Virus record (IMG/VR): IMGVR_UViG_3300031951_000003
Location: 124,001 to 188,000 of that record
DNA: 64,000 nt
Reading direction: 5' to 3' (one strand)
Shown here: positions 1,414-22,729 of the stretch, in pieces
Layout of the letters: the number at the start of each line of letters is the position of its first letter
How positions within the stretch are numbered: the stretch's first letter is position 1
Program-made: the position numbers and the translations under genes
Notes under the pieces: model-generated
The model's database searches: none
Seen by the model: only the letters and a program-made list of their open reading frames with translations
What the model was told of the DNA's origin: nothing

Positions 1414-1436
1414 TATCTTTGTTGTGTTCTTTGAAA
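1414..1436 (+). promoter_or_regulatory. Bacteroidota-type -7 promoter (TATCTTTG) and boxA-like GTTCTTTGAAA upstream of tmRNA
   Basis: Matches TAnnTTTG; the same boxA-like word precedes tRNA-Glu at 13458-13468. Confidence 0.6.
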
Positions 1437-1441
1437 ATATT

Positions 1442-1834: not shown

Positions 1835-1843
1835 CAGCAGATT

Positions 1844-5000: not shown

Positions 5001-5335
5001 CTTCTTTCCTTCCTTGGTTACACAGATTTGACCTTTCAGTGGCTCAAGATGTGTTCATAAAAATCAAAGGAAAAAGAAACACTTTCCAAATCAGAGCTGA
5101 CATCCTTAACTTCGGAAACATGGTTAATAACAAGTGGGGTGTTTCTCAAAGAGCGGCAGTTCCTCAGTTGTTAAACTTTGTAAGTAGAGACGCGAACAAT
5201 GTTCCTTCTTACAGACTTTCAACTCAAATTCTTGATGGACAAACAGTATTGGCAAAACAAACTTACCAATTCAACTCATCAGTATTTGACGTATGGAGTG
5301 CACAGTTAGGTATTAGATATACTTTCGGTAAGTAA
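2060..5335 (+). CDS. TonB-dependent outer-membrane receptor (Oar-like; carboxypeptidase-regulatory N-domain, plug, beta-barrel)
   Basis: Signal peptide; LSGVV..E.LVGATV N-domain; NNFTIDG and GAGINAVTRSGTN plug motifs; C-terminal QLGIRYTF. Confidence 0.92.
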   Translation: MKKAILMSLLTLFVTITSFGQITTSSLSGVVKNEKGETLVGATVHAVHQPTGSEYRATTNKTGVYSIPAVRVGGPYLIHVSYVGYRKAELTDINTLLGVTSNVDVTLISESKELKEVTIVGTRNNLFSKDKTGAAQQFGRRELTTIPITGARTIDGITKYNPFGDGRSFGAQDSRLNNFTIDGSQFNNNFGLGSSAAAGGRTGASAISLDAIDQLQVNVAPFDIRQSGFVGAGINAVTRSGTNEIEGSVYQTQRNNSKTYVGDNARGTTVTAQKFDEKVFGFRLGAPIIKNKLFIFGNYESIVRTEPGTTWISTGSPLTGSQVSRVKYDDMVRLSKFMRDTLGYETGPFEGYSNTNDSRKFMTRLDWNISPKHKLMARFVNHNSSAEINISNSQSAGAGNRTTQFNAMSFQNSGYIIMDNTRSGVLELNSKFSNTLHNNLIISYDKQIEDRAYMSQMFPTIDIREGSATYTSVGFDPFTPGNKLNYWTFNVTNNVTKYLEKHTLVGGFNYQMYQSNNLFFPASNGVYIFNSLNDFYTAAKQSVANNGGPSAFAPARFQFRYSALPGAVEPMQVLEANRLDLYVQDEYNLTKNLKLTTGLRANVISLGNTALENPAITSMTFGGGEKLNTSVMPKTQLLFEPRFGFNYDLKGEKKTQIRGGTGIFTGRPPFVFLSNQIGNNGVLTGFIDVSGAQASQYGFTTNPNQYFIPQTPTLPSTFDLAFTDANYKFPQVWRSNLAIDQKLPWLGLVASAEVLYNKTINAVHYYNANQDVPVGTLGGPDKRALFANTDPGVRVNDNVSMAAVLTNKQGAYNKSLTLKLEKPISKGVWGYAAWTTSRAEDYMSAGSIASGSWQSARSINGNNDLQLSTSDFVVRNRIVGLLGYRFDYGKKYGGATTITIGYVGAQNNPFSYTVAGDLNGDRVRDNELMFVPVNGSDIRFSTLTVGTRTYTEAEQQAAFESFISQDDYLSTRRGQYAERNASFLPWLHRFDLSVAQDVFIKIKGKRNTFQIRADILNFGNMVNNKWGVSQRAAVPQLLNFVSRDANNVPSYRLSTQILDGQTVLAKQTYQFNSSVFDVWSAQLGIRYTFGK

Positions 5336-10717: not shown

Positions 10718-10888
10718 TTATTTTACTTCTTCTGCTCTAACAGAATCTACAACTGGAGCTACTGTAGAGTCTACCAATGTTGAGTCTGCTACTACAGCAG
10801 TTGAATCGGTTTTTACTTCGTTTGATGTTGCTCCGTTTCCACATGATGCCAATGCTACGATTGACAAGATTGCAAGGATTTTTTTCAT
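10718..10888 (-). CDS. Small lipoprotein (56 aa), absent from ORF track
   Basis: MKKILAILSIVALASCGNGATSNEVKTDSTAVVADSTLVDSTVAPVVDSVRAEEVK; lipobox LASC. Confidence 0.8.
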   Translation of the reverse strand: MKKILAILSIVALASCGNGATSNEVKTDSTAVVADSTLVDSTVAPVVDSVRAEEVK

Positions 10889-10989
10889 TTTCTTTTTGTT
10901 TTTTTTGTTAATGTTTTAATAACGTCTTGAGTTTATAAATATAGAAAAGTTTTTCAGAATCGTCAATTAGCAGTGTAAACTTTTTTTTG

Positions 10990-11074
10990 CGGAGAGTATT
11001 GGATTCGAACCAATAGGCCAATTGCTCGACCACAGTTTAGCAAACTGCTCCTTTAACCACTCAGGCAACTCTCC
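10990..11074 (-). tRNA. tRNA-Ser(GCT)
   Basis: Cloverleaf with long variable arm; anticodon loop TTGCTAA. Confidence 0.93.
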
Positions 11075-11078
11075 TTTG

Positions 11079-11152
11079 TGTGAACGATGGGGTTCGAACC
11101 CACGACAACTAGCGCCACAAGCTAGTGCTCTTCCAACTGAGCTACGTTCACC
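11079..11152 (-). tRNA. tRNA-His(GTG)
   Basis: Cloverleaf; loop TTGTGGC; encoded G-1. Confidence 0.92.
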
Positions 11153-11164
11153 ATATTACTTACG

Positions 11165-11237
11165 AGGTCTTACTAGGATTCGAACCCAAATTTCTTCGTC
11201 CGTAGCGAAGTGTATTCATCCATTATACGATAAGACC
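11165..11237 (-). tRNA. tRNA-Arg(ACG)
   Basis: Cloverleaf; loop CTACGGA. Confidence 0.9.
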
Positions 11238-11320
11238 TATCTGTTATTTTCTTCTAAACATTTCGGACAAAGTCCGTCTTTGTCTAAAAGTGTTCCGTGA
11301 ATTCCACAAATATTATTCAT
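11237..11320 (-). CDS. 27-aa zinc-finger microprotein within the tRNA array
   Basis: MNNICGIHGTLLDKDGLCPKCLEENNR; CxxH...CxxC. Confidence 0.55.
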   Translation of the reverse strand: MNNICGIHGTLLDKDGLCPKCLEENNR

Positions 11321-11332
11321 AATAAAAATTTG

Positions 11333-11403
11333 TTATCCCCCAAGGATTCGAACCTTGAATAATTGGACCAAAACCAATTGTGTTACCGTTACACCAGAGG
11401 ATA
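11333..11403 (-). tRNA. tRNA-Gln(TTG)
   Basis: Cloverleaf; loop TTTTGGT. Confidence 0.9.
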
Positions 11404-11408
11404 TAATG

Positions 11409-11482
11409 TGGACCCTCACGGACTTGAACCGTGGACCTACTGATTATGAGTCAGCCGCTCTAACCAACTGAGCTAAGGGTCC
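11409..11482 (-). tRNA. tRNA with CAT anticodon, most likely Ile2 (lysidine type)
   Basis: GGACCCTTAGCTCAG...GACTCATAATC resembles Ile2 rather than initiator Met. Confidence 0.85.
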
Positions 11483-11549
11483 TTAAATGATTGTTACACT
11501 TGGTTGTGTTACTTCCTCCTGACACCACTCAGGACTTCAATCATTTTTG

Positions 11550-11631
11550 TGGGAGTAGCTGGACTCGAACCAACGAACTCGAAAGAGGGAAGATTTACAG
11601 TCTTCTGCCATTGCCACTAGGCGATACTCCC
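11550..11631 (-). tRNA. tRNA-Tyr(GTA)
   Basis: Cloverleaf with variable arm; loop CTGTAAA. Confidence 0.93.
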
Positions 11632-11635
11632 ATTA

Positions 11636-11768
11636 AGGAAAGGAGAAGATGGTTGCGTGGACATCTCCTTTTACGATTGGCATTACTCAGGTGTATTTCT
11701 CCCAACTCCGATGATACAGACCGAAATACACTCTCGAGTCATTAGTATCACCATTCCCCAATCAACCT
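11636..11768 (-). ncRNA. Candidate pseudoknotted ncRNA between tRNA-Trp and tRNA-Tyr
   Basis: Nested GATTGG/CCAATC, ACTC/GAGT, GTGTATTTC/GAAATACAC; second hairpin AAAGGAG-ATG/CAT-CTCCTTT; crossing pairs GGTGATAC/GTATCATC and GGTTG/CAACC. Confidence 0.6.
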
Positions 11769-11773
11769 ATTTG

Positions 11774-11846
11774 CACGCACGGTAGGACTCGAACCTACAA
11801 CACCTAGTTTTGGAGACTAGTACTCTACCAATTGAGCTACGCACGC
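11774..11846 (-). tRNA. tRNA-Trp(CCA)
   Basis: Cloverleaf; loop CTCCAAA. Confidence 0.92.
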
Positions 11847-11851
11847 GTGAC

Positions 11852-12400
11852 TTATTTTTTCGTCCATTTACTTTTAGAGAGTAAGTCATCCCAATCTTCA
11901 TATCCTTGTTCACGAGCATACTCATCGTTTTTTTTCCGAGTATATTCTTTCACTTTATCGGGGTCTCTCATTTCATCGGAATCTTTGAAACCTAATGATT
12001 TCGCACATTCCTCTTCACACCAGTTGTGAGAACCTATCTCTATGTTTATTGGTAAGTCAGTTTCCAAGGATTCGATAAAATCTTCGAATTGACTTGCCGA
12101 TTCATAAGGCATTGTGTAGATTCCTTCATGAACCTGATATCCACTTTCATTTTTACTGTCGAAAACCTCGATTCTACCCATTCTGTATTTTTCACCCATG
12201 AGTGAAAATACACCATATCCCACAGTTGAATAACTGAATCTACCACGAGTGCTTACACCTAACATATCAACACATCTTGGATTTGCCTCCATGTAATGCG
12301 CTAAGTGGTCAACAAGCATCTCATCACTTAGTTCTTTTCCTTCTTGTTTTCTTCGGATGTTATTCAGGAACCATAACAAATCCGCTCTATTGATTTTCAT
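11852..12400 (-). CDS. Hypothetical protein
   Basis: 182-aa ORF; TATCTTTG upstream (12416-12423). Confidence 0.7.
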   Translation of the reverse strand: MKINRADLLWFLNNIRRKQEGKELSDEMLVDHLAHYMEANPRCVDMLGVSTRGRFSYSTVGYGVFSLMGEKYRMGRIEVFDSKNESGYQVHEGIYTMPYESASQFEDFIESLETDLPINIEIGSHNWCEEECAKSLGFKDSDEMRDPDKVKEYTRKKNDEYAREQGYEDWDDLLSKSKWTKK

Positions 12401-12428
12401 AATTTTTTATTTATACAAAGATAACGAA

Positions 12429-12953
12429 TTATCTCTCAAGTTTTTTTATACATTCATCTATTTTATCTCTTAATCTACCACCATACCCGAAGTCACCATC
12501 TACCTGAACGTGTCTCCACATCGGAACTCTTGGTTTCATCCATTTATATTGACCATCAAGTTTCATGTCGTCGATTGAAATCCAATTTGAGATTTTATTA
12601 TCTTTTACCCACTTTGTGATTTCTGCTGCTCTTTCCCACTCAATTGAAGGTCTACTAAGTTTATTCCAAAGGTCCTGATGGGTTGTGATATCTACAATCG
12701 GAGCTGTTACACCATAGTATTGGAAAATACGTTTTAATTGTATAAAACTGAAATGTTTTCTCCAATCCGAACTCACAACTAAACTTGCGTTTGTTTCATC
12801 ACAAATTTTTTGAAGTGCTTGACAATCATCTTCAACCCATGGGTAAGGGATTGTAAAAGTTTTACTGTGTTCGTTCAGCGTAACTCTCCCATCACCCCAA
12901 GTTCCCCATGCCAGTGGTCCATCTACATCAATAAAAATAATTTTACGTCTCAT
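12429..12953 (-). CDS. HAD-domain protein of the Swiss-army-knife RNA-repair type (HAD_SAK_2-like)
   Basis: IIFIDVDGPL, VVSSDWR, WISIDD motifs. Confidence 0.75.
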   Translation of the reverse strand: MRRKIIFIDVDGPLAWGTWGDGRVTLNEHSKTFTIPYPWVEDDCQALQKICDETNASLVVSSDWRKHFSFIQLKRIFQYYGVTAPIVDITTHQDLWNKLSRPSIEWERAAEITKWVKDNKISNWISIDDMKLDGQYKWMKPRVPMWRHVQVDGDFGYGGRLRDKIDECIKKLER

Positions 12954-12967
12954 AACAATTTTATTTG

Positions 12968-13041
12968 TTGGAATGGGCGGATTCGAACCGCCGACATCTA
13001 ACGTATCAGATTAGCACTCTAACCAACTGAGTTACATTCCA
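12968..13041 (-). tRNA. tRNA-Ile(GAT)
   Basis: Cloverleaf; loop CTGATAC. Confidence 0.92.
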
Positions 13042-13047
13042 TTATTG

Positions 13048-13119
13048 AGGTCAGGATAGGAATCGAACCTACGTAGAAAGTTTTGCAGACTTCCGCCTAA
13101 GCCACTCGGCCACCCGACC
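13048..13119 (-). tRNA. tRNA-Cys(GCA)
   Basis: Cloverleaf; loop CTGCAAA; U73. Confidence 0.93.
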
Positions 13120-13126
13120 TTAATTG

Positions 13127-13198
13127 TGACCCCTGATGGATTCGAACCATCGACTTCTTCATTAAAAGTGAAGAGCTCTTCCACTGAGCTAAGAGGTC
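13127..13198 (-). tRNA. tRNA-Lys(TTT)
   Basis: Cloverleaf; loop CTTTTAA. Confidence 0.92.
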
Positions 13199-13202
13199 TT
13201 TG

Positions 13203-13275
13203 TGGTAACGGTCAGAATCGAACTGACCACACCTTGGTCTTCAGCCAAGTGCTCTACCAACTGAGCTACGTCACC
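13203..13275 (-). tRNA. tRNA-Phe(GAA)
   Basis: Cloverleaf; loop CTGAAGA. Confidence 0.92.
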
Positions 13276-13280
13276 ATTTG

Positions 13281-13353
13281 TAGTCCCTGTAGGAATCGAA
13301 CCTACGACACCTTGCATGTAAGGCAAGTGCTCTTCCAACTGAGCTAAGAGACT
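13281..13353 (-). tRNA. tRNA-Val(TAC)
   Basis: Cloverleaf; loop CTTACAT. Confidence 0.93.
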
Positions 13354-13360
13354 GAATTTG

Positions 13361-13432
13361 TAGCCCCGCACGGACTCGAACCGAAATCTCCACCGTGAAA
13401 GGGTGGCGTCCTAACCTTTAGACGACGGGGCC
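13361..13432 (-). tRNA. tRNA-Glu(TTC)
   Basis: Cloverleaf; loop CTTTCAC. Confidence 0.92.
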
Positions 13433-13457
13433 AAGAATTACAAACTTACAACCATTA

Positions 13458-13468
13458 TTTCAAAGAAC
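13458..13468 (-). promoter_or_regulatory. boxA-like antitermination element GTTCTTTGAAA
   Basis: Same word upstream of tmRNA; resembles rrn boxA. Confidence 0.5.
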
Positions 13469-13483
13469 CAAAAACTCCTTAAA

Positions 13484-13522
13484 TAAAAAAACCCCGAACT
13501 TCATTTCTGTAGTCCGAGGTTT
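13484..13522 (-). terminator. Attenuator terminator upstream of Glu..Ser tRNA block
   Basis: AAACCTCGGACT/AGTTCGGGGTTT + T run; 5' arm GGACTACAG can pair instead with CTGTAGTCT in the leader ORF. Confidence 0.85.
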
Positions 13523-13555
13523 GTATATATAACTCTTCAGGAATTATAGGCTATC

Positions 13556-13636
13556 TCATGAGACTACAGCGCGTGTCTTAAACCAACAAATCTCTTGTTG
13601 TTTACTATAGACTTTATTACGCACTATTGTTCTCAT
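13556..13636 (-). CDS. Leader peptide 1, MRTIVRNKVYSKQQEICWFKTRAVVS
   Basis: Follows TATATTTG (13654-13661); 3' end carries the antiterminator strand; codons match the downstream tRNAs. Confidence 0.75.
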   Translation of the reverse strand: MRTIVRNKVYSKQQEICWFKTRAVVS

Positions 13637-13695
13637 TATTATTATAATTACTACAAATATAGTAAATCTCTTTTAAAAATCAAATTATTTTTCTG

Positions 13696-13776
13696 TACCC
13701 CAAGAGAGACTCGAACTCTCACGACCGAAGTCATTGGTTCCTAAGACCAACGCGGCTACCATTACGCCATCGGGGT
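13696..13776 (-). tRNA. tRNA-Leu(TAG)
   Basis: Cloverleaf with variable arm; loop CTTAGGA. Confidence 0.92.
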
Positions 13777-13779
13777 ATT

Positions 13780-13995
13780 TTAGTGAGTTCCGTTTGTTAG
13801 AGAAACTCCGTGTTCAAACCCTTTTATGAAATCATTTATTTCTTCTTGGGTCATACTATTATAAACTCTCCCAACAACAAATCCAATTTCATTACCTAAA
13901 TCAGAAATATCGCCGATATAATTAATTTCTTTTTTGTGGTTATCAAATTCATTTAGAATTTTTTCCAAGATTGTATATGTAAACGCTCTAGTCAT
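13780..13995 (-). CDS. Hypothetical protein
   Basis: Start moved to MTRAFTY to avoid overlap with tRNA-Arg. Confidence 0.55.
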   Translation of the reverse strand: MTRAFTYTILEKILNEFDNHKKEINYIGDISDLGNEIGFVVGRVYNSMTQEEINDFIKGFEHGVSLTNGTH

Positions 13996-14007
13996 TTTTT
14001 TAAGTTG

Positions 14008-14079
14008 TAGTCCCGCCAAGAATCGAACTTGGAATTACTGCTTAGAAGGCAGTAGTTATATCCATTTAACTACAGGACC
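14008..14079 (-). tRNA. tRNA-Arg(TCT)
   Basis: Cloverleaf; loop CTTCTAA. Confidence 0.92.
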
Positions 14080-14083
14080 AAAG

Positions 14084-14170
14084 TACCTCAGGTGGGACTT
14101 GAACCCACACGGACATTTTCTGTCCACAAGATTTTAAGTCTTGCGCGTATACCGATTTCGCCACCAAGGT
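14084..14170 (-). tRNA. tRNA-Leu(TAA)
   Basis: Cloverleaf with variable arm; loop CTTAAAA. Confidence 0.93.
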
Positions 14171-14212
14171 ATAAAACAAAAGTAAGGAATCAGTATTGAA
14201 AAAACAAATGAA

Positions 14213-14917
14213 TTAGAACTTTTCTTCCCAAACAGTATCTCTTTCTGTTTCTTCAATATTCATTGTGTGATTTAAGGTTATCTCTTTACGGTCCAAATCA
14301 ATTTCGAAATTACCTTGAGAACCTTCGTTGATTTCCCATCCACCAAAATTATTTTCAAGCATTCTGTATGCGTAGTCTGAAACCACCGCAGGAACAGAAT
14401 CACCATTTGTAAAATCGTCTTCCAAGTAACCAGAGTCACCACTTCCATTGTAGTCAAGTTGAAGGACTCTATCACTAATTTCCTCGTCGTTTTCTAACGT
14501 ATCAAAAAGCTCCATTAAATCCTCATTGTCGTCTTCTTCCAAAGAATGAGTAATAGATTCGGTATTCCCAACATCATAGTAGCTATAGTCATAGGAGATT
14601 GAAATTTCTCTAGTTTTACAATCAATCTCAATCATAACTCTTCCCCAATTGATATCGTCATATTCGGGTTGTTTAATTAGTTCATTTTCACAAACATAAT
14701 AAATGCTTTTCTGAAAAATTGGAATTAATCCTTCAGGAATTTCCGCAACGTAATTATTTGAAAAATGTGTTACATTTTTCCAATCGATATCGTCACAATC
14801 AAAATAAGAGGTATTCATTTCGAATTCGACAAATGCATCTTCCATTCCGATGGAACCTAAATAACGACAGATACGATTTAAATACTTTTTTTCGTCTTTA
14901 GTTAATAAATCTTTCAT
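14213..14917 (-). CDS. DUF6878-like protein
   Basis: YNGSGDSG...GWEINEGSQG C-terminal motif. Confidence 0.6.
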   Translation of the reverse strand: MKDLLTKDEKKYLNRICRYLGSIGMEDAFVEFEMNTSYFDCDDIDWKNVTHFSNNYVAEIPEGLIPIFQKSIYYVCENELIKQPEYDDINWGRVMIEIDCKTREISISYDYSYYDVGNTESITHSLEEDDNEDLMELFDTLENDEEISDRVLQLDYNGSGDSGYLEDDFTNGDSVPAVVSDYAYRMLENNFGGWEINEGSQGNFEIDLDRKEITLNHTMNIEETERDTVWEEKF

Positions 14918-14930
14918 GATAATATAAATA

Positions 14931-15284
14931 TCAATCTTCGAACTCTAATTTTATTGTTTTCAACATCCAAGATGGCCTTGTGTTCGATACCATGTTGTTT
15001 ATCCATTCTTTTGCGGAAGGGATATAATTATTACAATCTTCCTTTACGTGTTGTTCACCAACATATCGGGTGTAGACTGTCTTACCATCACTGTTTTTGA
15101 ATTCAGGACCAAACCTCTTTTCCATTTCGAAAATCCCTTCCGAATGATGTCTAAACATTCTGTGTAAAGAATCCCCGAACCAACCTTTGGTCTCATCCAT
15201 CCACTCATGTAAATGAATATAATCCTCAGGTTTTCCACCAAACTTTTTAGCGGAACTTTTTGCATGTAAATTAGGGTGTGACAT
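14931..15284 (-). CDS. DUF6915-like protein
   Basis: MSHPNLHAKSSAKKFGGKPEDY..H.WMDETK..HRMFRHHSEGIF..EQHVKED; start reassigned. Confidence 0.7.
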   Translation of the reverse strand: MSHPNLHAKSSAKKFGGKPEDYIHLHEWMDETKGWFGDSLHRMFRHHSEGIFEMEKRFGPEFKNSDGKTVYTRYVGEQHVKEDCNNYIPSAKEWINNMVSNTRPSWMLKTIKLEFED

Positions 15285-15870
15285 TTCTCCAAGATTCTTT
15301 TCGATAACCAAATAAATGAAATTGCTCCTCAAAAATTTTATAAACGTAGTTGGATACTTCTTCATCATAAAATTCCTTCCATGGTTTCCTTTTTTCATTC
15401 ATTTGTCCTTCAAATTCTGTTTTGAATTTGTTATTACTTATGAACTCATCAAAGGTTTTCTTGATATCGGAATTCTCCAAATCCAAAAATTTCAAAGACT
15501 TGAGGTCATTCTCCAAATTTTCCTGTTTTATGAATTTATCAAATGGTCTACCCAAAATTTCATAATTTTTATGATATTGTAATTGATAATCATTAATTAT
15601 TTTCGGGTTTTCGAGGGATTCGAAAACCCAAGTTTTGAAATGTTTTTGAAAATCATTCAAATGATGTGAATACAAATAAAACAGGGATACTAGTCTAGAG
15701 TAAGGGTTTCTAACGTTTGATACGAAGAAATAGTCTTTTTTGTTGGAATCAAATGTAAAATGATGGTCAAAAGTTTGAAAACCCATAACACGAAGAAGTT
15801 CTTTAGTTGAACGTGTTCCTGTTCTTTGTGGGGTAAACCAATAAACTTTGTGTTTCTCTGAGATATGCAT
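15271..15870 (-). CDS. Sulfotransferase family 2-like protein
   Basis: PQRTGTRS and VRNPYSRLVS motifs; paralog of 7533-8153. Confidence 0.75.
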   Translation of the reverse strand: MHISEKHKVYWFTPQRTGTRSTKELLRVMGFQTFDHHFTFDSNKKDYFFVSNVRNPYSRLVSLFYLYSHHLNDFQKHFKTWVFESLENPKIINDYQLQYHKNYEILGRPFDKFIKQENLENDLKSLKFLDLENSDIKKTFDEFISNNKFKTEFEGQMNEKRKPWKEFYDEEVSNYVYKIFEEQFHLFGYRKESWRNVTP

Positions 15871-16103
15871 TAGTAAATTTTTGTGTTGTTTCTTCTTGCC
15901 TCTTCCGCTTCCTTATAGATACGTATCCAAGTTAGAGTAATATCAACAGGTGCTAACACCCAACACATGATAATCAAACCTAAAGTATCTAATCCAGGTG
16001 AGATACCAAGACCACCTGCCATAACATCTCTGTTCCATTTTCTTACTGACATGACAAGACAATAAGCCAAACAGATTAAATAATAAGACCAAAAAATTTC
16101 CAT
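15870..16103 (-). CDS. Small membrane protein
   Basis: Two hydrophobic segments; abuts the next gene. Confidence 0.55.
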   Translation of the reverse strand: MEIFWSYYLICLAYCLVMSVRKWNRDVMAGGLGISPGLDTLGLIIMCWVLAPVDITLTWIRIYKEAEEARRNNTKIY

Positions 16104-16119
16104 AACTTTCAAATTTTAG

Positions 16120-16192
16120 TGGAGAATGAGGGAGTCGAACCCACGACAACTTGAATGCAAATCAAGTGCTCTACCAACTGAGCTAATTCCCC
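16120..16192 (-). tRNA. tRNA-Ala(TGC)
   Basis: G3.U70; loop TTTGCAT. Confidence 0.93.
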
Positions 16193-16198
16193 TATTTG

Positions 16199-16271
16199 AG
16201 CCTCCTGTCGGAATCGAACCAACGACCTACTGATTACAAATCAGTTGCTCTACCTGCTGAGCTAAGGAGGC
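16199..16271 (-). tRNA. tRNA-Thr(TGT)
   Basis: Cloverleaf; loop TTTGTAA. Confidence 0.93.
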
Positions 16272-16277
16272 GATGTG

Positions 16278-16350
16278 AGCGGAAGACCAGGCTCGAACTG
16301 GCCACCCCGACCTTGGCAAGGTCGTGCTCTACCGAATGAGCTACTTCCGC
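16278..16350 (-). tRNA. tRNA-Gly(GCC)
   Basis: Cloverleaf; loop TTGCCAA. Confidence 0.94.
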
Positions 16351-16359
16351 AATTTTCTG

Positions 16360-16432
16360 AGCGGGAGACCAGGCTCGAACTGGCCACCTATAGCTTGGAA
16401 GGCTATCGCTCTACCAAATGAGCTACTCCCGC
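16360..16432 (-). tRNA. tRNA-Gly(TCC)
   Basis: Cloverleaf; loop CTTCCAA. Confidence 0.94.
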
Positions 16433-16436
16433 ATAT

Positions 16437-16538
16437 TCCGTTTTTCCTTCACATTTAGCCCAATCACCAGTGAAACAATGATTGGATTTTGGATGGAGAA
16501 GTCTGCAAGGATTTCTCCCATTAGACCGTTACCACGGA
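16437..16538 (-). ncRNA. Candidate structured RNA between tRNA-Asp and tRNA-Gly
   Basis: Closing TCCGT/ACGGA; internal GGAGAA/TTCTCC and CCAATCA/TGATTGG. Confidence 0.4.
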
Positions 16539-16551
16539 CAAACTCTACCAG

Positions 16552-16625
16552 CGGAACGGACGGGGCTCGAACCCGCGACCTCTTGCGTGACAGGCAAGCA
16601 TTCTAGCCAACTGAACTACCGCTCC
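16552..16625 (-). tRNA. tRNA-Asp(GTC)
   Basis: Cloverleaf; loop CTGTCAC. Confidence 0.94.
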
Positions 16626-16630
16626 ATTTG

Positions 16631-16817
16631 AACAGGTTTTTTGTGTCCTTTTACACATCATGACCAACATATTACTACATTGGTGGTTACATTTTCGTCT
16701 TTGGTTAATTACTCCTGACTTATAGTAAACACTACCCTCACCGCTCTGATACCGCGAATCAAGACGGCGTCTTTGGGATTCATATACCGTGGGGTTCCAC
16801 CACAGTCTTCACCTGTT
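16631..16817 (-). ncRNA. Candidate ~190-nt multi-stem ncRNA between tRNA-Asn and tRNA-Asp
   Basis: Ends pair AACAGGT/ACCTGTT; stems CTGTGG/CCACGG, CGTCTT/AAGACG, CCAA/TTGG, TGTGT/ACACA. Confidence 0.5.
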
Positions 16818-16820
16818 TTG

Positions 16821-16892
16821 CGTCCTCTCATGGGCTCGAACCATGGACCCTCTCGTTAACAGCGAGATGCTCTACCGCTGAGCTAAGAAGAC
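16821..16892 (-). tRNA. tRNA-Asn(GTT)
   Basis: Cloverleaf; loop CTGTTAA. Confidence 0.93.
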
Positions 16893-16898
16893 GTTTTG

Positions 16899-16972
16899 TT
16901 GGGAAGACAGGATTCGAACCTGCGGCCCCCTGGTCCCAAACCAGGTGCTCTACCGGGCTGAGCCACTTCCCA
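16899..16972 (-). tRNA. tRNA-Pro(TGG)
   Basis: Cloverleaf; loop TTTGGGA. Confidence 0.93.
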
Positions 16973-16989
16973 TTATTAAACAAAGGTAA

Positions 16990-17023
16990 TAAAAAAACCC
17001 CGAACTTTCAAGATTCAGGGTTT
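16990..17023 (-). terminator. Attenuator terminator upstream of Pro..Leu tRNA block
   Basis: AAACCCTGAAT/GTTCGGGGTTT + T run; CTGAATCT can pair instead with AGATTCAG in the leader ORF. Confidence 0.85.
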
Positions 17024-17045
17024 TAATGTTTGGCTTTGTTTTTTA

Positions 17046-17147
17046 TTATCCTACATCTGTATCTGAATCTAAGCATAGATTACCCCCATCACCATTAGGT
17101 GTTGTAGGTCTGAACACTAAATTCGTATTAACAAAAAGTTGTTTCAT
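17046..17147 (-). CDS. Leader peptide 2, MKQLFVNTNLVFRPTTPNGDGGNLCLDSDTDVG
   Basis: TATTTAT upstream; contains the antiterminator strand; rich in N/T/G/D/L/P and AGA-Arg matching the downstream tRNAs. Confidence 0.72.
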   Translation of the reverse strand: MKQLFVNTNLVFRPTTPNGDGGNLCLDSDTDVG

Positions 17148-17169
17148 ATTCTAATAAATACAAAGGATT

Positions 17170-17442
17170 TTATAAAAGTCTACTGAAGACTTTTTCAAAA
17201 TATTCTTCCTCTTCGTTGGTTAACGAATAATATTTTGATTTTAACTTATCGAGTTTTTCCTCAAATTCCCTTTCACCATACCCTGTAGGTTTGATGGACT
17301 TTTTAACATCACCTTTTTCATTATAGAGAGCCTGAGGTAGATGACCATCATCTACAAGTTCTTTAATCAATTCTTTGATGTCACTTTTGTTACAAGCTCG
17401 AACGAATTCGTATGGTTCGATATCAATATCTATGTATGGCAT
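17170..17442 (-). CDS. Hypothetical protein
   Basis: 90-aa ORF. Confidence 0.65.
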   Translation of the reverse strand: MPYIDIDIEPYEFVRACNKSDIKELIKELVDDGHLPQALYNEKGDVKKSIKPTGYGEREFEEKLDKLKSKYYSLTNEEEEYFEKVFSRLL

Positions 17443-17472
17443 TTTTAATAATTTTCACAAAGTTATGAAAAA

Positions 17473-18141
17473 TTATTGAATACCAAAAAAGTTTTTTCTT
17501 TTTTCTATGTCTTGCATTATTTTCTTGATTCTCTGAACAGTTTGGTCAATCTCTGAATCAAGTTCTTTAACTTTCATTTCGAGGCTTTGGATTTTTTCAG
17601 GTCCCTCTTTTTTATATAGGTATCTTTCCATAGATGTTAAAGGACTTTCGAGAGGTTTTCGCCCTCTTTTCTTTGGTTCTGAAGGTTGAGGTATTTCCTG
17701 TTTTTTCGGAATAAAAGCAATGTCAGTTTTTATTTCGGGTTCAAATTGTTTTTCTTTATTTTTTGAACCTGCGGGTCTTCCTCTTTTTCCTGTTGGTTCA
17801 GGTTTTCCATATCTTAATATCTTGGATGCAATTTTGGGAAACGTTGAGCTTACTGATTTGATGAAAGTTTGTGATTCTTTGGGACTCAACATATTCAAGA
17901 AATCGCCAAGTCTATACAATGCACCGACCAACTCTGAATCTGTATTTGCCTTTTCAGTCGTTTTAAATTTTACGAATGTTCTGAATTGCTCCATATTTGG
18001 TAAGGAATTAATCAACTGGGGTTTCGAATATAATTCCTCGAATAACCATTCTCCGAGGTTCTTAACAATCCAATCGAATTTTTCATCCGACATCAATCTT
18101 GCTTCGGATAATAAGTCTTCGTAAAAAAGAAAAAATTTCAT
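17473..18141 (-). CDS. Hypothetical protein with AT-hook-like motifs and C-terminal coiled coil
   Basis: KRGRP and KKRGRKP motifs; N-terminal LLSE; TATTTAT upstream. Confidence 0.7.
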   Translation of the reverse strand: MKFFLFYEDLLSEARLMSDEKFDWIVKNLGEWLFEELYSKPQLINSLPNMEQFRTFVKFKTTEKANTDSELVGALYRLGDFLNMLSPKESQTFIKSVSSTFPKIASKILRYGKPEPTGKRGRPAGSKNKEKQFEPEIKTDIAFIPKKQEIPQPSEPKKRGRKPLESPLTSMERYLYKKEGPEKIQSLEMKVKELDSEIDQTVQRIKKIMQDIEKRKNFFGIQ

Positions 18142-19464: not shown

Positions 19465-21135
19465 ATGAGGGTATTAGGATTTTCTGTCGGACACGACAAA
19501 GGTGCTGTTATTGTTGAAAATGGAAAAGTCTTGATTGGAATTACTCAAGAAAGAATTTCAAGAATCAAACATGATGGAGCACATCAAGGTGGATTAATTC
19601 CTGCCGAATCTATAAGATATTGTCTTGAAAATTCAGGATATACTTTTAGAGATATCGATTTATTTGTCTACAGCACAACTGAAATTGTTGATGACGTTCA
19701 AAAAAAGTTTATCGAAGAATTTCAGTTTGACCCTACGGGTAAATTCGAGTTTTTACCTCATCATTTGGCCCACGCATATTCTTCTTTTTTTAGTTCAGGA
19801 TTCGATGATGCCGTTGTGGTTGTTGCAGACGCATCGGGTAGTATTTTGAATGAAAAAAATAAATTACCTGAGTGGTATCCGAAAGTTAGTAGGAAAGGTC
19901 TCAATCACGAAGAAGATTGGACAGAAGCAATTTCAATTTATCATTTTAATAAAAATGATTACAAAGAGGTTTATAAGAAATGGATAAAATATCCTGTTCC
20001 GATTGATACTAACGAAGATGTTTCTGTCGGAACCGTTTACTCTGAAGGTTCACTTCAATTAATTTATGAACCCAATACCAATTCTTGGCCTGCAGGTAAA
20101 CTGATGGGACTTGCGTCATATGCTGACAAGGACATAGTCGAGGAAGCTCCACATTATATTGTTGAAACAGAAGATGGAGATATTTTCATTCCAAATAATA
20201 GAATATATCCCAAAGTGACATATGATTCAGATTTTTTCTCAAGAGCTTGTGTTGCTGGAATATATCAAAGGGAACAAGAAAGGGTATCTCTAATGTTAGC
20301 GAAGAAAGCAAAGGAATTGACCGATTCTGAAAATATTTGCGTGGCAGGTGGGTCTTTCCTTAATTGTAATTCTAACGAAAAAATCCTCAACTCAGGATTG
20401 TTTGAGGGTTGTTACTTCATACCTCCCTCTGACGATAGTGGAATCCCTTTAGGGTGCGCCTGGTATGGTTATCAACTTATGAGTCCGATTGAAAAAAATA
20501 ATTTTCTTTCTCCTTACATAGGTAAAAATTATTCTAACAATGATATTGTTTCAGCAATAAACCAATACCCAAATTTATATCATGAAAGATTTGATGATTT
20601 TGACGAACTTGTTGATAAAGTCTCACATTGGTTAACTCAAAATAGGGTCATAGGCTGGTTTCAAGACCAATCTGAAATTGGACCTAGAGCTCTTGGTAAT
20701 CGTTCAATCTTAGCATCACCTATCAACAAATGGATGACAGGTCACATTAATTCAGACATCAAAAAAAGAGAATGGTATAGACCGTTTGCACCCGCCGTGT
20801 TATTTGAACACCAAAGTGAAATTTTTGATTCTAATGTTTTTTCTCCATATATGTTGGTTACGACTAACGTAAAAGAATCTTGGAGAGATAAAATACCTGC
20901 AGTAACTCACATTGACGGTTCCGCTAGACATCAATCGGTTTCAGAAAAATCTAATTATAAATTTTATAAATTAATCGAGAGTTTTTATAACAAAACAGGA
21001 GTTCCAGTTTTACTCAACACGAGTTTCAATGGCCCTCATGAACCAATTGTTGAAACTCCAAAGAATGCAATTGACACCATGTTAAGTTGTAAACTCGATT
21101 ACTTAGTAATAGGAAATTATTTAATCAAAAGATAG
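19465..21135 (+). CDS. Carbamoyltransferase (NodU/CmcH family)
   Basis: HD..A, ERISRIKH, HHLAHA, GKLMGLASY, GPRALGNRSILA, RPFAP, LLNTSFN..EPIVE. Confidence 0.93.
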   Translation: MRVLGFSVGHDKGAVIVENGKVLIGITQERISRIKHDGAHQGGLIPAESIRYCLENSGYTFRDIDLFVYSTTEIVDDVQKKFIEEFQFDPTGKFEFLPHHLAHAYSSFFSSGFDDAVVVVADASGSILNEKNKLPEWYPKVSRKGLNHEEDWTEAISIYHFNKNDYKEVYKKWIKYPVPIDTNEDVSVGTVYSEGSLQLIYEPNTNSWPAGKLMGLASYADKDIVEEAPHYIVETEDGDIFIPNNRIYPKVTYDSDFFSRACVAGIYQREQERVSLMLAKKAKELTDSENICVAGGSFLNCNSNEKILNSGLFEGCYFIPPSDDSGIPLGCAWYGYQLMSPIEKNNFLSPYIGKNYSNNDIVSAINQYPNLYHERFDDFDELVDKVSHWLTQNRVIGWFQDQSEIGPRALGNRSILASPINKWMTGHINSDIKKREWYRPFAPAVLFEHQSEIFDSNVFSPYMLVTTNVKESWRDKIPAVTHIDGSARHQSVSEKSNYKFYKLIESFYNKTGVPVLLNTSFNGPHEPIVETPKNAIDTMLSCKLDYLVIGNYLIKR

Positions 21136-21136
21136 T

Positions 21137-22729
21137 ATGAGCACGATTTATGGTTTTTTTGGTGGTTCTCATAGTCCATCCGCGTGTTTAATTAGAAATG
21201 GAAAGATTGTATCATGTATAGAAGAAGAAAGATTAACCAGAATTAAGGCTGGTGACAACTTCGACAGTTTTCCAGAATTATCCTCAGAAGAAATTCAAAA
21301 ATACACAGGTCTTAATGTTCACGATGCTGATTATAGGGTTTTTGTTGAGCCGGTAATCGATGCGTTCGCAAAAAAATTGACCAAGGATAATTTTGAGAGA
21401 GTTGGTCATCACGATGCTCATTGCTATGGTTCTTATTTTACAAGTGGTATGGATGGAAAAGTTTTAAGTATTTCATACGACGGTGGAGGAGACAAAACCG
21501 TAATGAAAGTCTACCTTTGTGAAGATGGTAAAATGAATTTGGCATATTCTTATGATTTTGCAACAACGGGAAGTATACCTCATCTTTGGGCATTCAGTGT
21601 GACCTCAATTAGAGGATATAACGAGAATGGAGAGAGCATTTGGAAAATGTGTAAAGACGAAGGGAAACTTATGGGAATGGCACCTGATGGGTTTTACGAT
21701 GAGAGGATATATAAAATTCTGAATTCAATAATCGATTACAAAGACTTCAAATTTTTCCCATCGAATACGGGTGCGAAAGCTAGATTTGTTGTAGACACAA
21801 TGTTCAGGAAAGGTTATTTCGACTCACAAGAGAAACTTCAGGTTTTTTCGTTTAACTTACAAAAATTAACTGAAGACCTTTTCCTTAATTTTTTAGACGA
21901 CCTTCACACTAGATTTCCCGATTATAAAAAATTATGTTTTTCTGGTGGTTTGTTTGCCAACGTAAAATTAAATCAAAAAATTAATCAACTACCTTGGGTT
22001 GAGGAAATATATATTGTTCCACCTATGGGAGACGAAGGGTTAAGCTTAGGTGCATGTATAAAGAAAGCAGTAGACTTGGGTGAAATCACAAAACCATTCA
22101 AATTGGATAATGTTTTTTTTGGTAAAGAGTATGATGATGACCAAATTTCATTGATTAGTCAAAAATATAATTTTGAGAAAAAGATATATAACCCTTCTGA
22201 AATCGCTAAGAATATTGATGAGGGTGAAATTATCGGTTGGTTTCAACACGGATTTGAATTTGGTCCACGAGCCTTGGGTGGTAGAAGTATTCTTATGAGA
22301 CCAACAAGCTCAGACACTCATAGTAAATTAAACAAAAGGTTGAAAAGACATGATTCGATGCCATTTGCACCTATTGTAATGTCAGAATATTTTGATGAAA
22401 TTTTCTTTGAAACAAAGTCAAAATACTCCGCAGAATTTATGACTATTTGTTATCAAACTAAAGAGAATTGGATTGAAAAAATACCTGCGGTAATCCAAAA
22501 ATCAGATAAGACTGCGAGACCTCAGATTGTAAAAAGAGAGAAGAACTACAAATTTTGGGAAATACTTGATGAATACTATAAAATTTCAAATATACCTGTT
22601 TTGTTAAATACTTCTTTCAACACTCACAATGAACCAATTGTAGATAACCCCGAACAAGCCTTTTCTAAATTACAAGATAAAACTTTAGATAAATTAGTTA
22701 TTGGAAATTATGTTTACACAAATAGGTGA
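21137..22729 (+). CDS. Carbamoyltransferase (NodU/CmcH family), second copy
   Basis: EEERLTRIK, HHDAH, DGGGD, EGKLMGMA, GPRALGGRS, LLNTSFN. Confidence 0.93.
   Translation: MSTIYGFFGGSHSPSACLIRNGKIVSCIEEERLTRIKAGDNFDSFPELSSEEIQKYTGLNVHDADYRVFVEPVIDAFAKKLTKDNFERVGHHDAHCYGSYFTSGMDGKVLSISYDGGGDKTVMKVYLCEDGKMNLAYSYDFATTGSIPHLWAFSVTSIRGYNENGESIWKMCKDEGKLMGMAPDGFYDERIYKILNSIIDYKDFKFFPSNTGAKARFVVDTMFRKGYFDSQEKLQVFSFNLQKLTEDLFLNFLDDLHTRFPDYKKLCFSGGLFANVKLNQKINQLPWVEEIYIVPPMGDEGLSLGACIKKAVDLGEITKPFKLDNVFFGKEYDDDQISLISQKYNFEKKIYNPSEIAKNIDEGEIIGWFQHGFEFGPRALGGRSILMRPTSSDTHSKLNKRLKRHDSMPFAPIVMSEYFDEIFFETKSKYSAEFMTICYQTKENWIEKIPAVIQKSDKTARPQIVKREKNYKFWEILDEYYKISNIPVLLNTSFNTHNEPIVDNPEQAFSKLQDKTLDKLVIGNYVYTNR

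Follow-up and report, generated by a model that had tools for sequence, protein, structure and literature searches.

Does a large phage that carries its own tRNA genes measure their supply, and can it adjust their transcription accordingly? This question is raised by a locus in the genome of a giant, roughly 321-kb freshwater phage, whose host is probably a member of Bacteroidota. We analysed a stretch of 64,000 nucleotides of this genome (hereafter the window; IMG/VR record IMGVR_UViG_3300031951_000003, positions 124,001 to 188,000), in which a 33-codon ORF and an intrinsic terminator lie directly ahead of a block of tRNA genes on the minus strand. An earlier sequence-only reading had proposed that the ORF is a leader whose codons sample the downstream tRNAs, and that it controls the terminator by an alternative pairing. 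We found every element of this observation to be present where it had been placed. The interpretation is only partly supported, in that the core idea gains comparative evidence from relatives while two accessory points do not. In our view the phage probably measures its own tRNA supply by translation of the leader and adjusts tRNA production.

Layout of the leader and of the tRNA blocks

The features of the locus are collected in Table 1. The twelve codons 13-24 of the ORF, namely AGA, CCT (twice), ACA (twice), AAT (twice), GGT (twice), GAT, GGG and CTA, can each be read by a tRNA gene located between 16972 and 13695, and Ala is the only tRNA of that stretch with no codon in the run, as the sequence-only reading had stated. 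Taken from the window alone, the chance levels are modest. An 8-nt complement arises in 2.3% of shuffled ORFs, and a run of 12 or more residues from this amino acid set has P = 3e-4 for a 32-aa peptide. Only four such runs exist in all six frames of the window, of which this is the only one that uses all seven residue types. The real strength of the case comes from the relatives.

Table 1. Features of the two leader modules and of the tRNA blocks behind them (window coordinates).
Position	Strand	Feature	Detail
17154..17160	-	TATTTAT box, promoter-like -7 element (promoter function inferred)	TATATTTAT in relatives; 6 nt (window) or 14 nt (most relatives) before the leader ATG
17046..17147	-	Leader ORF, 33 codons plus TAA	MKQLFVNTNLVFRPTTPNGDGGNLCLDSDTDVG; ATG at 17147, stop at 17048-17046, second in-frame TAA at 17045-17043
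17076..17111	-	Codon run, codons 13-24, proposed tRNA-sensing part	RPTTPNGDGGNL; conserved core PTTPNGDGG
17083..17108	-	Hairpin P1 inside the run, possible RNA polymerase pause hairpin	CC..CA.CACC-UAAU-GGUG.UG..GG
17063..17070	-	Segment 2, antiterminator strand inside codons 26-29	AGAUUCAG; AGATTCAG (17070-17063) is the exact complement of CTGAATCT (17018-17011)
17025..17057	-	Weak inner hairpin P2 (predicted)	GAUGUA (17057-17052) with AACAUU (17030-17025); encloses the stop codon and brings segments 2 and 3 together
16991..17024	-	Intrinsic terminator	12-bp stem (17024-17013 with 17005-16994), 7-nt loop (17012-17006), T7 run ending at 16991
17011..17018	-	Segment 3	CUGAAUCU; overlaps the 5' arm and loop of the terminator
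16981..16988	-	Bacteroidota-type -7 promoter box	TACCTTTG; 8 nt before tRNA-Pro (16972); predicted start about 16976, 4 nt before the mature tRNA-Pro 5' end
13695..16972	-	Block A (regulation inferred)	tRNA-Pro, Asn, Asp, Gly(tcc), Gly(gcc), Thr, Ala, then five protein genes, then tRNA-Leu(taa), Arg(tct), Leu(tag)
13441..13661	-	Second leader module
13654..13661	-	Promoter-like box of the second module	TATATTTG
13556..13636	-	Second leader ORF	26 codons
	-	Hairpin of the second module	CAACAA-GAGAU-UUGUUG
13562..13569	-	Segment 2 of the second module	CUGUAGUC
13484..13522	-	Terminator of the second module	contains GACUACAG (13514-13507)
13441..13448	-	Box ahead of tRNA-Glu	TAAGTTTG
10989..13432	-	Block B, behind the second leader	tRNA-Glu, Val, Phe, Lys, Cys, Ile, then two protein genes, then Trp, Tyr, Met, Gln, Arg(acg), His, Ser(gct)

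Conservation, codon content and alternative pairing in relatives

To find relatives we first searched the INPHARED phages with blastn and tblastn, which returned only tRNA similarity and no relatives of the neighbouring gene, while the five IMG/VR contigs found first are identical over the leader and hence carry no information. Among further viral and metagenome contigs, however, about 20 distinct variants keep the ATG, the frame, the stop, the core PTTPNGDGG, the terminator and tRNA-Pro immediately downstream. These ORFs have 31-34 codons, and all indels are multiples of three. The TATTTAT box is invariant in 21/21 aligned variants while its flanks vary, although TATATTTAT is not significantly enriched in the window (5 observed against 1.9 expected). 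The order of the tRNA genes is conserved in relatives, with tRNA-Ala present only in the window. More distant relatives (L011-L014; L numbers denote relatives) have the same tRNA start without any leader, showing that the device is dispensable. A scan of 185,579 species genomes gave three hits, all of them chance matches in unrelated genes or in GC-richer DNA with no terminator or tRNA nearby, and therefore no sign of a cellular origin. Pfam and PHROGs contained no family for either leader peptide or for the 90-aa and 222-aa neighbours.

The relatives indicate selection on the composition of the peptide rather than on its order. The N-terminal part varies in order and length (NLNLNTGNR, NTNTNLDT, NLNTNTL, TLNLNTRTNT and others), yet 87% of its residues are P, N, D, G, T, L or R against a background of 41%. 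The run extends towards the N-terminus to 18-20 residues, uses exactly those seven types (P of a run of 18 or more is about 5e-7), and this set equals the tRNA genes between this leader and the next one in relatives: Pro, Asn, Asp, Gly, Thr, Leu and Arg(tct). The match is imperfect, since the window has tRNA-Ala but no Ala codon in the run, and the L007-L009 lineage lacks tRNA-Asp and tRNA-Leu in the block yet keeps D and L codons. Indeed, we looked for co-variation between the content of the first leader and its own tRNA block and did not find it; the core hardly varies.

The second, unrelated leader has the same architecture and provides an independent replicate. Its family has an 18-residue run (MRHIVFSKQQEICWYEIM in L071) that contains all 13 amino acids of its own downstream tRNAs and none from the first block (P of a run of 18 or more = 2.7e-4; P of 13 types in 18 draws = 5.6e-4). 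The split extends to the codon level: Arg is AGA in the runs of the first leader and CGT/CGC (11% of Arg codons in the long ORFs of the window) in those of the second, matching tRNA-Arg(tct) and tRNA-Arg(acg), while Ser in the second run is AGT, matching Ser(gct). The rare codons CTA and CCG recur in the first leader, whose runs of 12-20 residues use exactly the amino acids, and the Arg and Leu codon families, of the tRNAs in the block behind it. Lineages that lack tRNA-Arg(acg) and tRNA-Lys (L035, L052) have lost the R and K codons from the second leader (Fisher p = 5e-5).

We next investigated the pairing between the 3' part of the ORF and the terminator, whose conservation in related phages had been named beforehand as a check. 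Across 21 variants 90.7% of cells are paired, the pair 135-194 is GC14/AU7 without exception, 0/500 shuffles reach the score, and slid controls give 40% or less. The second family has an 11-bp antiterminator that is 90.9% paired, with two covarying pairs. The C-terminal peptides of both families change reading frame between lineages, while the nucleotides that pair are kept. The covariation comes from a small number of lineages and could partly reflect linkage. The terminator itself is 98% paired in 21 variants (slid controls 57% or less), with a stem-loop energy of -12 to -16 kcal/mol. RNAalifold predicts the antiterminator, together with P2, on the alignment truncated before the 3' arm, and the terminator on the full alignment; the antiterminator is also the dominant fold before the 3' arm exists. 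P2 is 92.9% paired, with many G-U pairs and one mismatch in the window itself. P1 is 99-100% paired in 21 sequences, and one pair covaries AU17/UA4 through two synonymous changes; this hairpin explains why the order of the core codons is fixed, while its role as a pause hairpin is putative.

Two further points of the sequence-only reading are not supported. A local hairpin AAUCUA/UAGAUU had been proposed to sequester segment 2. AATCTA-TGCT-TAGATT is present, but it occurs only in the window and in L030, and it does not compete in the fold (P(antiterminator) = 0.92 with the whole leader free), so that we reject it as a general element. For some other lineages a long-range pairing between the N-terminal codons and segment 2 (a 1:2 helix) is predicted instead, and a 5-bp pairing of UGAAY (codons 4-5) with segment 2 is part of a longer helix only in some lineages. 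TATTTAT had also been proposed to drive a separate, possibly late, wave of transcription to which the attenuator might be confined; we have no evidence for such a promoter class. In relatives the box reads TATATTTA, one base from the Bacteroidota -7 consensus TAHHTTTG (PMC6847099), and in the second leader family it alternates with canonical TATATTTG/TATCTTTG boxes. The upstream 90-aa gene has no terminator of its own, so a transcript start near 17150 is not required for the model.

A promoter box behind the terminator, which the sequence-only reading had already pointed out, is found in the window and in most relatives, and much tRNA transcription may therefore bypass the device. The same kind of box sits 6-8 nt before the first tRNA of two other sub-blocks (14184, 13448). 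In the L020/25/31/48, L027/35/45 and L030 lineages, however, the box is absent and tRNA-Pro starts 0-5 nt after the T-run, leaving no room for a promoter, so it can only be transcribed through the terminator. A search of RNA runs gave low shares and assembled contigs without strand or ends, from which neither transcript starts nor termination efficiency could be read. Among these, contigs of 331 and 346 nt from two RNA libraries span leader, terminator and tRNA-Pro of relatives, but they could be DNA carry-over.

A model for the locus and its alternatives

We believe that the locus is best explained as a ribosome-mediated (leader-peptide) transcription attenuator in front of a block of phage tRNA genes, one of two such modules in this tRNA region, and we give this reading a probability of roughly 0.65. 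Our analysis establishes the conservation, the alternative pairings with their covariation and the match between codons and tRNAs, whereas translation of the ORF, stalling, termination and its dependence on charged-tRNA supply, and the direction of the response are inferred. In this model, transcription would enter the leader from the TATTTAT box or from the upstream 90-aa gene, and a ribosome would translate the ORF, whose first two thirds consist of codons read by the tRNAs encoded downstream. If those aminoacyl-tRNAs are plentiful, the ribosome would keep up with the polymerase and reach the stop codon, where it would sit on or next to segment 2 and between segments 2 and 3, so that the terminator folds and transcription stops. 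By geometry alone, 14 nt (window) or 17 nt (most relatives) lie between segment 2 and the stop, so that the ribosome would overlap segment 2 by 0-4 nt; in the second leader the stop is adjacent to segment 2. If any of those tRNAs is scarce, the ribosome would stall in the run, and segment 2 would stay free to pair with segment 3, helped by P2. The terminator could then not form, and the polymerase would read into tRNA-Pro and beyond. Codons 23-24 (N, L) are poor sensor positions, because a ribosome stalled there would itself cover segment 2. The antiterminator is short (6-8 bp, -8 to -12 kcal/mol) and weaker than the terminator, and must therefore win kinetically. Most tRNAs are sampled by only one to four codons, far fewer than in the his or trp leaders, so the sensitivity is uncertain. 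The result would be a negative feedback on phage tRNA supply, to which the TACCTTTG promoter would add a basal, unregulated input in this genome, making regulation partial.

Of the alternatives, all of which we consider unlikely, an arrest peptide that stalls the ribosome in response to some ligand or state, as TnaC or SecM do, would control the same terminator without sensing tRNA levels. The order of the core is nearly invariant, which such a peptide would also produce, and the RNA switch would work with any cause of stalling. On the other hand, the core overlaps the covarying hairpin P1, which by itself fixes the codon order, L076 has PTTPNGDTG, the second leader has an unrelated sequence but the same codon-to-tRNA logic, and leader codons are lost together with tRNA genes. 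Similarly, the ORF could encode a small functional peptide with its own promoter and terminator that happens to lie next to the tRNA block. The core and the common C-terminus S-E-D-T-D-V-G are indeed conserved at the amino-acid level with some synonymous changes, and most genomes have a separate promoter for the tRNAs. Yet the peptide belongs to no Pfam or PHROG family, its N-terminal third keeps composition but not order, and its C-terminus changes reading frame between lineages (DTDVG versus ASGW) while the nucleotides GTTGG and GTTCAG are kept. Moreover, this reading does not explain why two unrelated peptides split the amino acids exactly as the tRNA genes are split, or why the 3' end of the ORF covaries with the terminator.

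Slightly less likely still is a plain constitutive terminator that insulates the tRNA promoter from upstream transcription, with the ORF and the complementarity being incidental. The terminator is strong and conserved, a canonical promoter box follows it in most variants, and the 8-nt complement alone has P = 0.023. Against this stand the maintained ORF with in-frame indels only, the covarying pairing, a match between composition and tRNA set far beyond chance, and the three lineages without room for a promoter, in which a constitutive terminator would silence tRNA-Pro. Finally, an untranslated structured RNA, for example a processing or stability element of the tRNA precursor or a small RNA, would fit the conserved helices (P1, P2, terminator), the RNA-library contigs that join it to tRNA-Pro and the very short leader 5' UTR in the window, but not the indels in multiples of three, the start and stop kept in every variant, the substitutions that stay within the amino acids having downstream tRNAs, and the lack of an Rfam match.

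One may go further and speculate that phage tRNA arrays can be organised into modules, each guarded by a "sampler" leader peptide containing codons for every tRNA of its module. The phage would then read out, by translation speed, whether each of its own tRNAs (or the host's equivalents) is available, and would top up transcription of just that module, as a feedback circuit for tRNA homeostasis during infection that could also respond to host defences that cleave or deplete tRNAs. We consider this about as likely as not. How phages regulate the tRNA genes that many large phages carry is essentially unknown, and classical attenuation has been tied to amino-acid biosynthesis and a few synthetase genes. 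A leader peptide that samples 7 or 13 different tRNAs and gates transcription of those same tRNA genes would be a new use of attenuation, namely direct feedback on tRNA supply, and an example of this mechanism in a Bacteroidota-type system. It would also give a simple sequence rule (leader composition equals downstream tRNA set) for finding such circuits in other phage and cellular tRNA arrays, and would connect to the current interest in phage tRNAs as a counter to host translation shut-off and tRNA-targeting defences. The two-module design, with Arg split by codon family, makes clean predictions that are easy to test with reporters.

Comparison with known systems

Phage tRNA gene arrays (T4, T5, cyanophages, jumbo phages) likewise consist of clustered tRNA genes interspersed with small ORFs, and tRNAs similar to those of the window turned up in many phages. 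In the literature we found no report of leader ORFs matched to such an array or of leader-peptide attenuation of tRNA genes, and INPHARED holds no relative of this region outside the tRNAs themselves. T-box riboswitches also couple the state of specific tRNAs to a terminator/antiterminator choice in a leader RNA. However, a T-box binds uncharged tRNA directly through a specifier codon and the T-box sequence, without translation, and controls aminoacyl-tRNA synthetase, transport and biosynthesis genes, while the element here is an ORF. A search of positions 10800-17500 against Rfam, even at E up to 1, gave no match other than tRNAs, hence neither a T-box (RF00230) nor any of the curated leader families (Thr, His, Leu, Trp, Phe leaders and others).

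The pheST (phenylalanyl-tRNA synthetase) attenuator of E. coli is a leader-peptide attenuator that controls a component of the translation apparatus in response to the supply of the cognate charged tRNA, but it senses a single amino acid, regulates a synthetase rather than tRNA genes, and is a host element. The leader-peptide attenuators of the amino-acid operons of Proteobacteria (trpL, hisL, thrL, ilvL/ivbL, pheL, leuL) share with our locus a short ORF, translated in those operons, with diagnostic codons, a hairpin inside the leader, and an intrinsic terminator whose 5' arm can instead pair with a segment at the 3' end of the ORF. In the second module the stop codon lies next to segment 2, some lineages have a predicted 1:2 helix, and thrL and ilvL already sense two or three amino acids at once. 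There is no sequence or Rfam similarity to these leaders. Here, the modules are phage-encoded in a Bacteroidota-type promoter context, a second promoter usually follows the terminator, and the antiterminator is weaker than the terminator. The leaders sample 7 and 13 different amino acids, mostly with one to four codons each, instead of a tandem run of one to three kinds, and the genes proposed to be regulated are tRNAs, not biosynthetic enzymes.

Position of the module and its conservation in one clade

All of the elements described by the sequence-only reading were found on the minus strand at exactly the positions it had assigned to them, so that its observation held in full. The features of the window are collected in the table. 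Segment 2, inside the ORF, is the exact complement of segment 3, which covers the top of the terminator's 5' arm and two loop bases. On the window alone, however, the statistics are only suggestive. An 8-nt complement arises in 2.3% of shuffled ORFs. A run of 12 or more residues from the set of the first tRNA block has P = 3e-4 for a peptide of this size, and only four such runs occur in all six frames of the 64 kb.

Features of the window discussed in the text
Feature	Position	Strand	Remarks
90-aa gene	17442-17170	-	Upstream of the leader
TATTTAT box	17160-17154	-
First leader ORF	17147-17046	-	33 codons, MKQLFVNTNLVFRPTTPNGDGGNLCLDSDTDVG; second in-frame TAA behind the stop; A-rich spacer follows
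Segment 2	17070-17063	-	AGATTCAG
Terminator	17024-17013 with 17005-16994	-	12-bp stem, 7-nt loop, T7 run to 16991
Segment 3	17018-17011	-	CTGAATCT
Promoter box	16988-16981	-	TACCTTTG
tRNA-Pro	16972 (start)	-	Starts 8 nt after the promoter box
Spacers between tRNA-Asn, tRNA-Asp and tRNA-Gly	16626-16819 and 16433-16550	-	194 and 118 nt, relatively GC-rich, no Rfam match
Further TAnnTTTG boxes before tRNA sub-blocks	14184; 13448
Second leader module	13441-13661	-	Ahead of tRNA-Glu; ORF, internal hairpin, terminator and promoter box
Second leader ORF	13636-13556	-	26 codons, MRTIVRNKVYSKQQEICWFKTRAVVS
HAD_SAK_2 protein	12429-12953	-	174 aa, inside the tRNA region; match to the HAD domain of 'Swiss Army Knife' RNA-repair proteins (E = 9e-20); could be tRNA repair next to the tRNA genes
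tmRNA gene	1414-1835	+	Phage-encoded; tag peptide AEEATVVA; TATCTTTG box at 1414, terminator-like GGGGTTTTTT at 1860
SusC/TonB-dependent-receptor-like outer-membrane barrel (CarboxypepD_reg plus OMP barrel) and protein with a type-IX-secretion C-terminal sorting domain	2060-5335 and 43239-45146	+ and +	Unusual cargo
Two adjacent carbamoyltransferase paralogues and a polyphosphate kinase 2 gene	19465-22729 and 41560-42666	+ and -	Paralogues of 556 and 530 aa, conserved in relatives next to a ClpP-like protease
tRNA-Ser(tga)	37395		Reads TCN

The window is part of a phage of about 321 kb that is known only from freshwater metagenomes (IMG/VR contigs) and has no relatives among deposited phage genomes. 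Three observations point to a Bacteroidota host. The phage encodes the SusC-like barrel and the protein with the type-IX-secretion sorting domain. Its tRNA sub-blocks are each preceded, 6-8 nt upstream, by a TAnnTTTG box. This box is the Bacteroidota -7 promoter element, in which the G lies at -5 and the transcription start 4-5 nt further on (PMC6847099).

In order to find out whether the leader is conserved, we collected relatives in three ways: through homologues of the neighbouring 222-aa protein at 48-87% identity together with their contigs, with a degenerate DNA pattern that allows synonymous changes and was run on viral contigs, and with a second DNA pattern, run on metagenome contigs, in which the core was fixed except at two third-codon positions. 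Together these gave about 20 distinct versions, which were aligned (alignment A2). Every version has a TATTTAT box, an ATG and an ORF of 31-34 codons with length differences only in multiples of three, the core PTTPNGDGG (PTTPNGDTG in the relative L076), a stop codon, the spacer motif AGCCAA, a terminator of the form AAACCCTGAA(T/C)...GGGGTTTTTTT, and tRNA-Pro(tgg) directly downstream. More distant relatives, with 53-63% identity in the neighbour protein, lack the 90-aa gene and the leader and run straight from the 222-aa gene into the tRNAs. The module is therefore an addition in one clade. It was not found in a scan of 185,579 species genomes, in Rfam, or in Pfam/PHROGs.

Leader composition and the downstream tRNA genes

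The tRNA order is conserved across the clade. The first leader is followed by Pro, Asn, Asp, Gly(tcc), sometimes Gly(gcc), and Thr, while Ala occurs only in the window. A few protein genes follow, and then Leu(taa), Arg(tct) and Leu(tag). A second small ORF with its own terminator comes next, behind which lie Glu, Val, Phe, Lys, Cys, Trp, Tyr, Met, Gln, Arg(acg), Met, His, Ile and Ser(gct). This second leader module is conserved in about 12 variants. In the contigs L001 and L002 (the latter IMGVR_UViG_3300021599_002910), which are identical over both leaders, the distance between the two leaders nevertheless differs by 191 nt (second-leader core at 10351 in L002 versus 10542 in L001), implying an indel somewhere in the first tRNA block.

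In relatives, the run of the first leader is longer than in the window. The relative L041, for example, reads M-K-[NLNLNTGNRPTTPNGDGGRL]-CLDSDTDVG, which gives 20 consecutive residues using exactly P, N, D, G, T, L and R, the seven amino acids of the first block. The second leader family has runs such as MRHIVFSKQQEICWYEIM in the relative L071, in which 18 residues contain all 13 amino acids of the second block, including Cys, Trp, His and Met, and none from the first block. With amino-acid frequencies taken from the window's long ORFs, P(run of 18 or more) is about 5e-7 for the first leader and 2.7e-4 for the second, and the chance that 18 draws cover all 13 types is a further 5.6e-4. Put another way, the two runs split 19 of the 20 amino acids, all but Ala, into two sets that overlap only at Arg. 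This is the same split that the position of the second leader imposes on the tRNA genes, one partition out of 77,520 of that size.

The match extends to the codons. Arg in the runs of the first leader is always AGA, read by tRNA-Arg(tct), while Arg in the runs of the second leader is always CGT or CGC (11% of Arg codons in the window's long ORFs), read by tRNA-Arg(acg). Ser in the second run is AGT, read by Ser(gct), whereas tRNA-Ser(tga) lies elsewhere. The rare codons CTA (8% of Leu codons) and CCG (9% of Pro codons) recur in the first leader. Its variable N-terminal part changes order and length between lineages but stays 87% within the seven residues, against 41% in the background, and in the second leader 39 of 45 distinct residue states at positions 5-22 belong to its own set (P = 4e-5). 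This points to selection on which tRNAs are used, not on a peptide sequence. The order of the invariant core is explained by an overlapping hairpin, P1 (CACC-UAAU-GGUG with outer pairs), which is fully paired in all 21 sequences and switches A-U to U-A through two synonymous changes, ACA to ACT and GGT to GGA. The second leader has an analogous hairpin, CAACAA-GAGAU-UUGUUG, in its core QQE-x-CW.

We next asked whether leader and tRNA content vary together. The relative L035 has only Glu, Cys, Trp, Tyr, Met, Gln, His and Ile behind the second leader, and relative to L071 its leader has R to H, V to I, S to C and K to Q. Four of the five positions whose tRNA is missing changed, against one of thirteen others (P = 0.008). 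The relative L052 lacks Arg(acg), Lys, Val, Ile and Ser, and has R to Q, K to H and V to S. Over eight lineages and twelve amino acids the table is 79/1/10/6 (P = 5e-5), although the contigs are incomplete, tRNAs may lie elsewhere in those genomes, and the lineages are not independent. In the relative L062, ARAGORN finds no tRNA behind the second leader (2560-2640), where relatives have tRNA-Glu, and the sequence looks like a decayed tRNA; in this lineage one Glu codon of the leader (position 20) is Gln. For the first leader we saw no such co-variation. The window's tRNA-Ala has no codon in the run, and the L007-L009 lineage lacks tRNA-Asp and tRNA-Leu in the block yet keeps D and L codons.

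Alternative RNA structures and the route of transcription

In alignment A2 the terminator is 98% paired, against 57% or less when the partners are slid. The pairing of ORF columns 133-140 with terminator columns 189-196 is 90.7% paired; one pair is GC in 14 sequences and AU in 7, with no exception, and a neighbouring pair shows GC, AU and UA. No shuffle out of 500 reaches the covariation score, and slid controls reach 40% or less. RNAalifold on the alignment truncated before the 3' arm predicts P1, this segment 2:3 helix and a weak inner hairpin P2 around the stop codon, while on the full alignment it predicts P1 plus the terminator. Per sequence, the antiterminator duplex is -8 to -12 kcal/mol and the terminator -12 to -16 kcal/mol. 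Before the 3' arm exists, the antiterminator has probability 1.0 in the fold if the 5' part is masked, as by a stalled ribosome, but at equilibrium in the full transcript the terminator wins. The exception is L019/L020, a clade that includes a promoter-less lineage, where the two structures are equally stable.

The second family has an 11-bp antiterminator that is 90.9% paired, with two covarying pairs (UA9/CG2 and GC9/AU2), and a terminator that is 100% paired. In the window the 5' and 3' ends of the second ORF also pair over about 16 bp (1:2 helix, z = -4.6). In both families the C-terminal peptide changes reading frame between lineages (DTDVG versus ASGW; FKTRAVVS versus YEIMPCSSDV), while the pairing nucleotides (GTTCAG, GTTGG, TGTAGT) are kept. 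The 3' third of each ORF is therefore constrained as RNA.

Inferring from footprint sizes, a ribosome stalled at codons up to about 21 would leave segment 2 free, while codons 23-24, which the sequence-only reading had included in its sensor run, would be too close to segment 2 to act as useful sensors. At the stop codon, 14 nt in the window or 17 nt in most relatives separate segment 2 from the stop. The ribosome would therefore overlap at most the last few bases of segment 2 and would sit between segments 2 and 3. In the second leader the stop abuts segment 2, as in trpL.

In the window and most relatives a canonical TA(C/T)CTTTG box follows the terminator, so the tRNAs have their own promoter. 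In three lineages (L020/L025/L031/L048, L027/L035/L045 and L030), however, tRNA-Pro begins 0-5 nt after the T-run. There the terminator lies between the only visible promoter and the tRNA, which is hard to reconcile with a constitutive terminator. In L019 (2400-2450), about 40 nt are inserted between the terminator and tRNA-Pro relative to its close relative L020, and the insert carries a TTGACA-like hexamer but no TAnnTTTG box. The upstream 90-aa gene has no terminator of its own. The leader is therefore also reached by transcription from upstream, and a start near 17150 is not essential to the model.

The transcript evidence is weak and consists of assembled contigs from RNA libraries only. 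A 331-nt contig (depth 52) in a metatranscriptome and a 346-nt contig in a second run both span tRNA-Pro, the terminator and the leader, and being about 88-91% identical to the window they come from relatives. In the first run only one short piece (depth 8.5) matched the upstream gene. This is compatible with read-through precursors, but it does not exclude DNA carry-over and says nothing about regulation. For the long spacers between tRNA-Asn, tRNA-Asp and tRNA-Gly, an 89-nt contig from an RNA library is identical to 16701-16789 at depth 71. The first spacer folds only slightly better than shuffles (z = -2.2).

Interpretation and comparison with known attenuators

The core of the reading of the element as an attenuator sensing its downstream tRNAs is supported by the comparative evidence, but two points of the form first proposed are not supported. 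The AAUCUA/UAGAUU hairpin, which had been suggested to sequester segment 2, exists only in the window and L030, and it does not displace the antiterminator in the fold. In L037 and the L038 type, a long helix between the N-terminal codons (UUUGAAUUUAAA) and the segment-2 region is predicted to play the 1:2 role instead. The suggestion that TATTTAT marks a separate, possibly late promoter class remains a conjecture. In relatives the box is TATATTTA, which is TAHHTTTG with A for the nearly invariant G, and in the second leader family this box and canonical TATATTTG/TATCTTTG boxes replace one another. TATATTTAT is not significantly enriched in the window.

The sequence data by themselves show a maintained ORF, diagnostic codons, an intrinsic terminator and a covarying, mutually exclusive antiterminator, whereas the dependence of termination on translation and on tRNA supply is inferred. 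We are highly confident that the conserved ORF-terminator-antiterminator module is real, and we put the probability of the proposed mechanism at about 0.65. Full-text searches of the literature found no report of such a device, although absence from the texts searched is not proof of absence.

The architecture is that of classical leader-peptide attenuation, and it meets those criteria that can be assessed at the level of sequence. It is not a T-box and matches no curated leader family in Rfam. Compared with classical leader-peptide attenuation, three things are new. The target is tRNA genes. The proposed sensing is broad, with one leader sampling 7 amino acids and the other 13, each matching its own module and with Arg divided by codon family. 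Finally, the setting is a phage of a Bacteroidota-type host.
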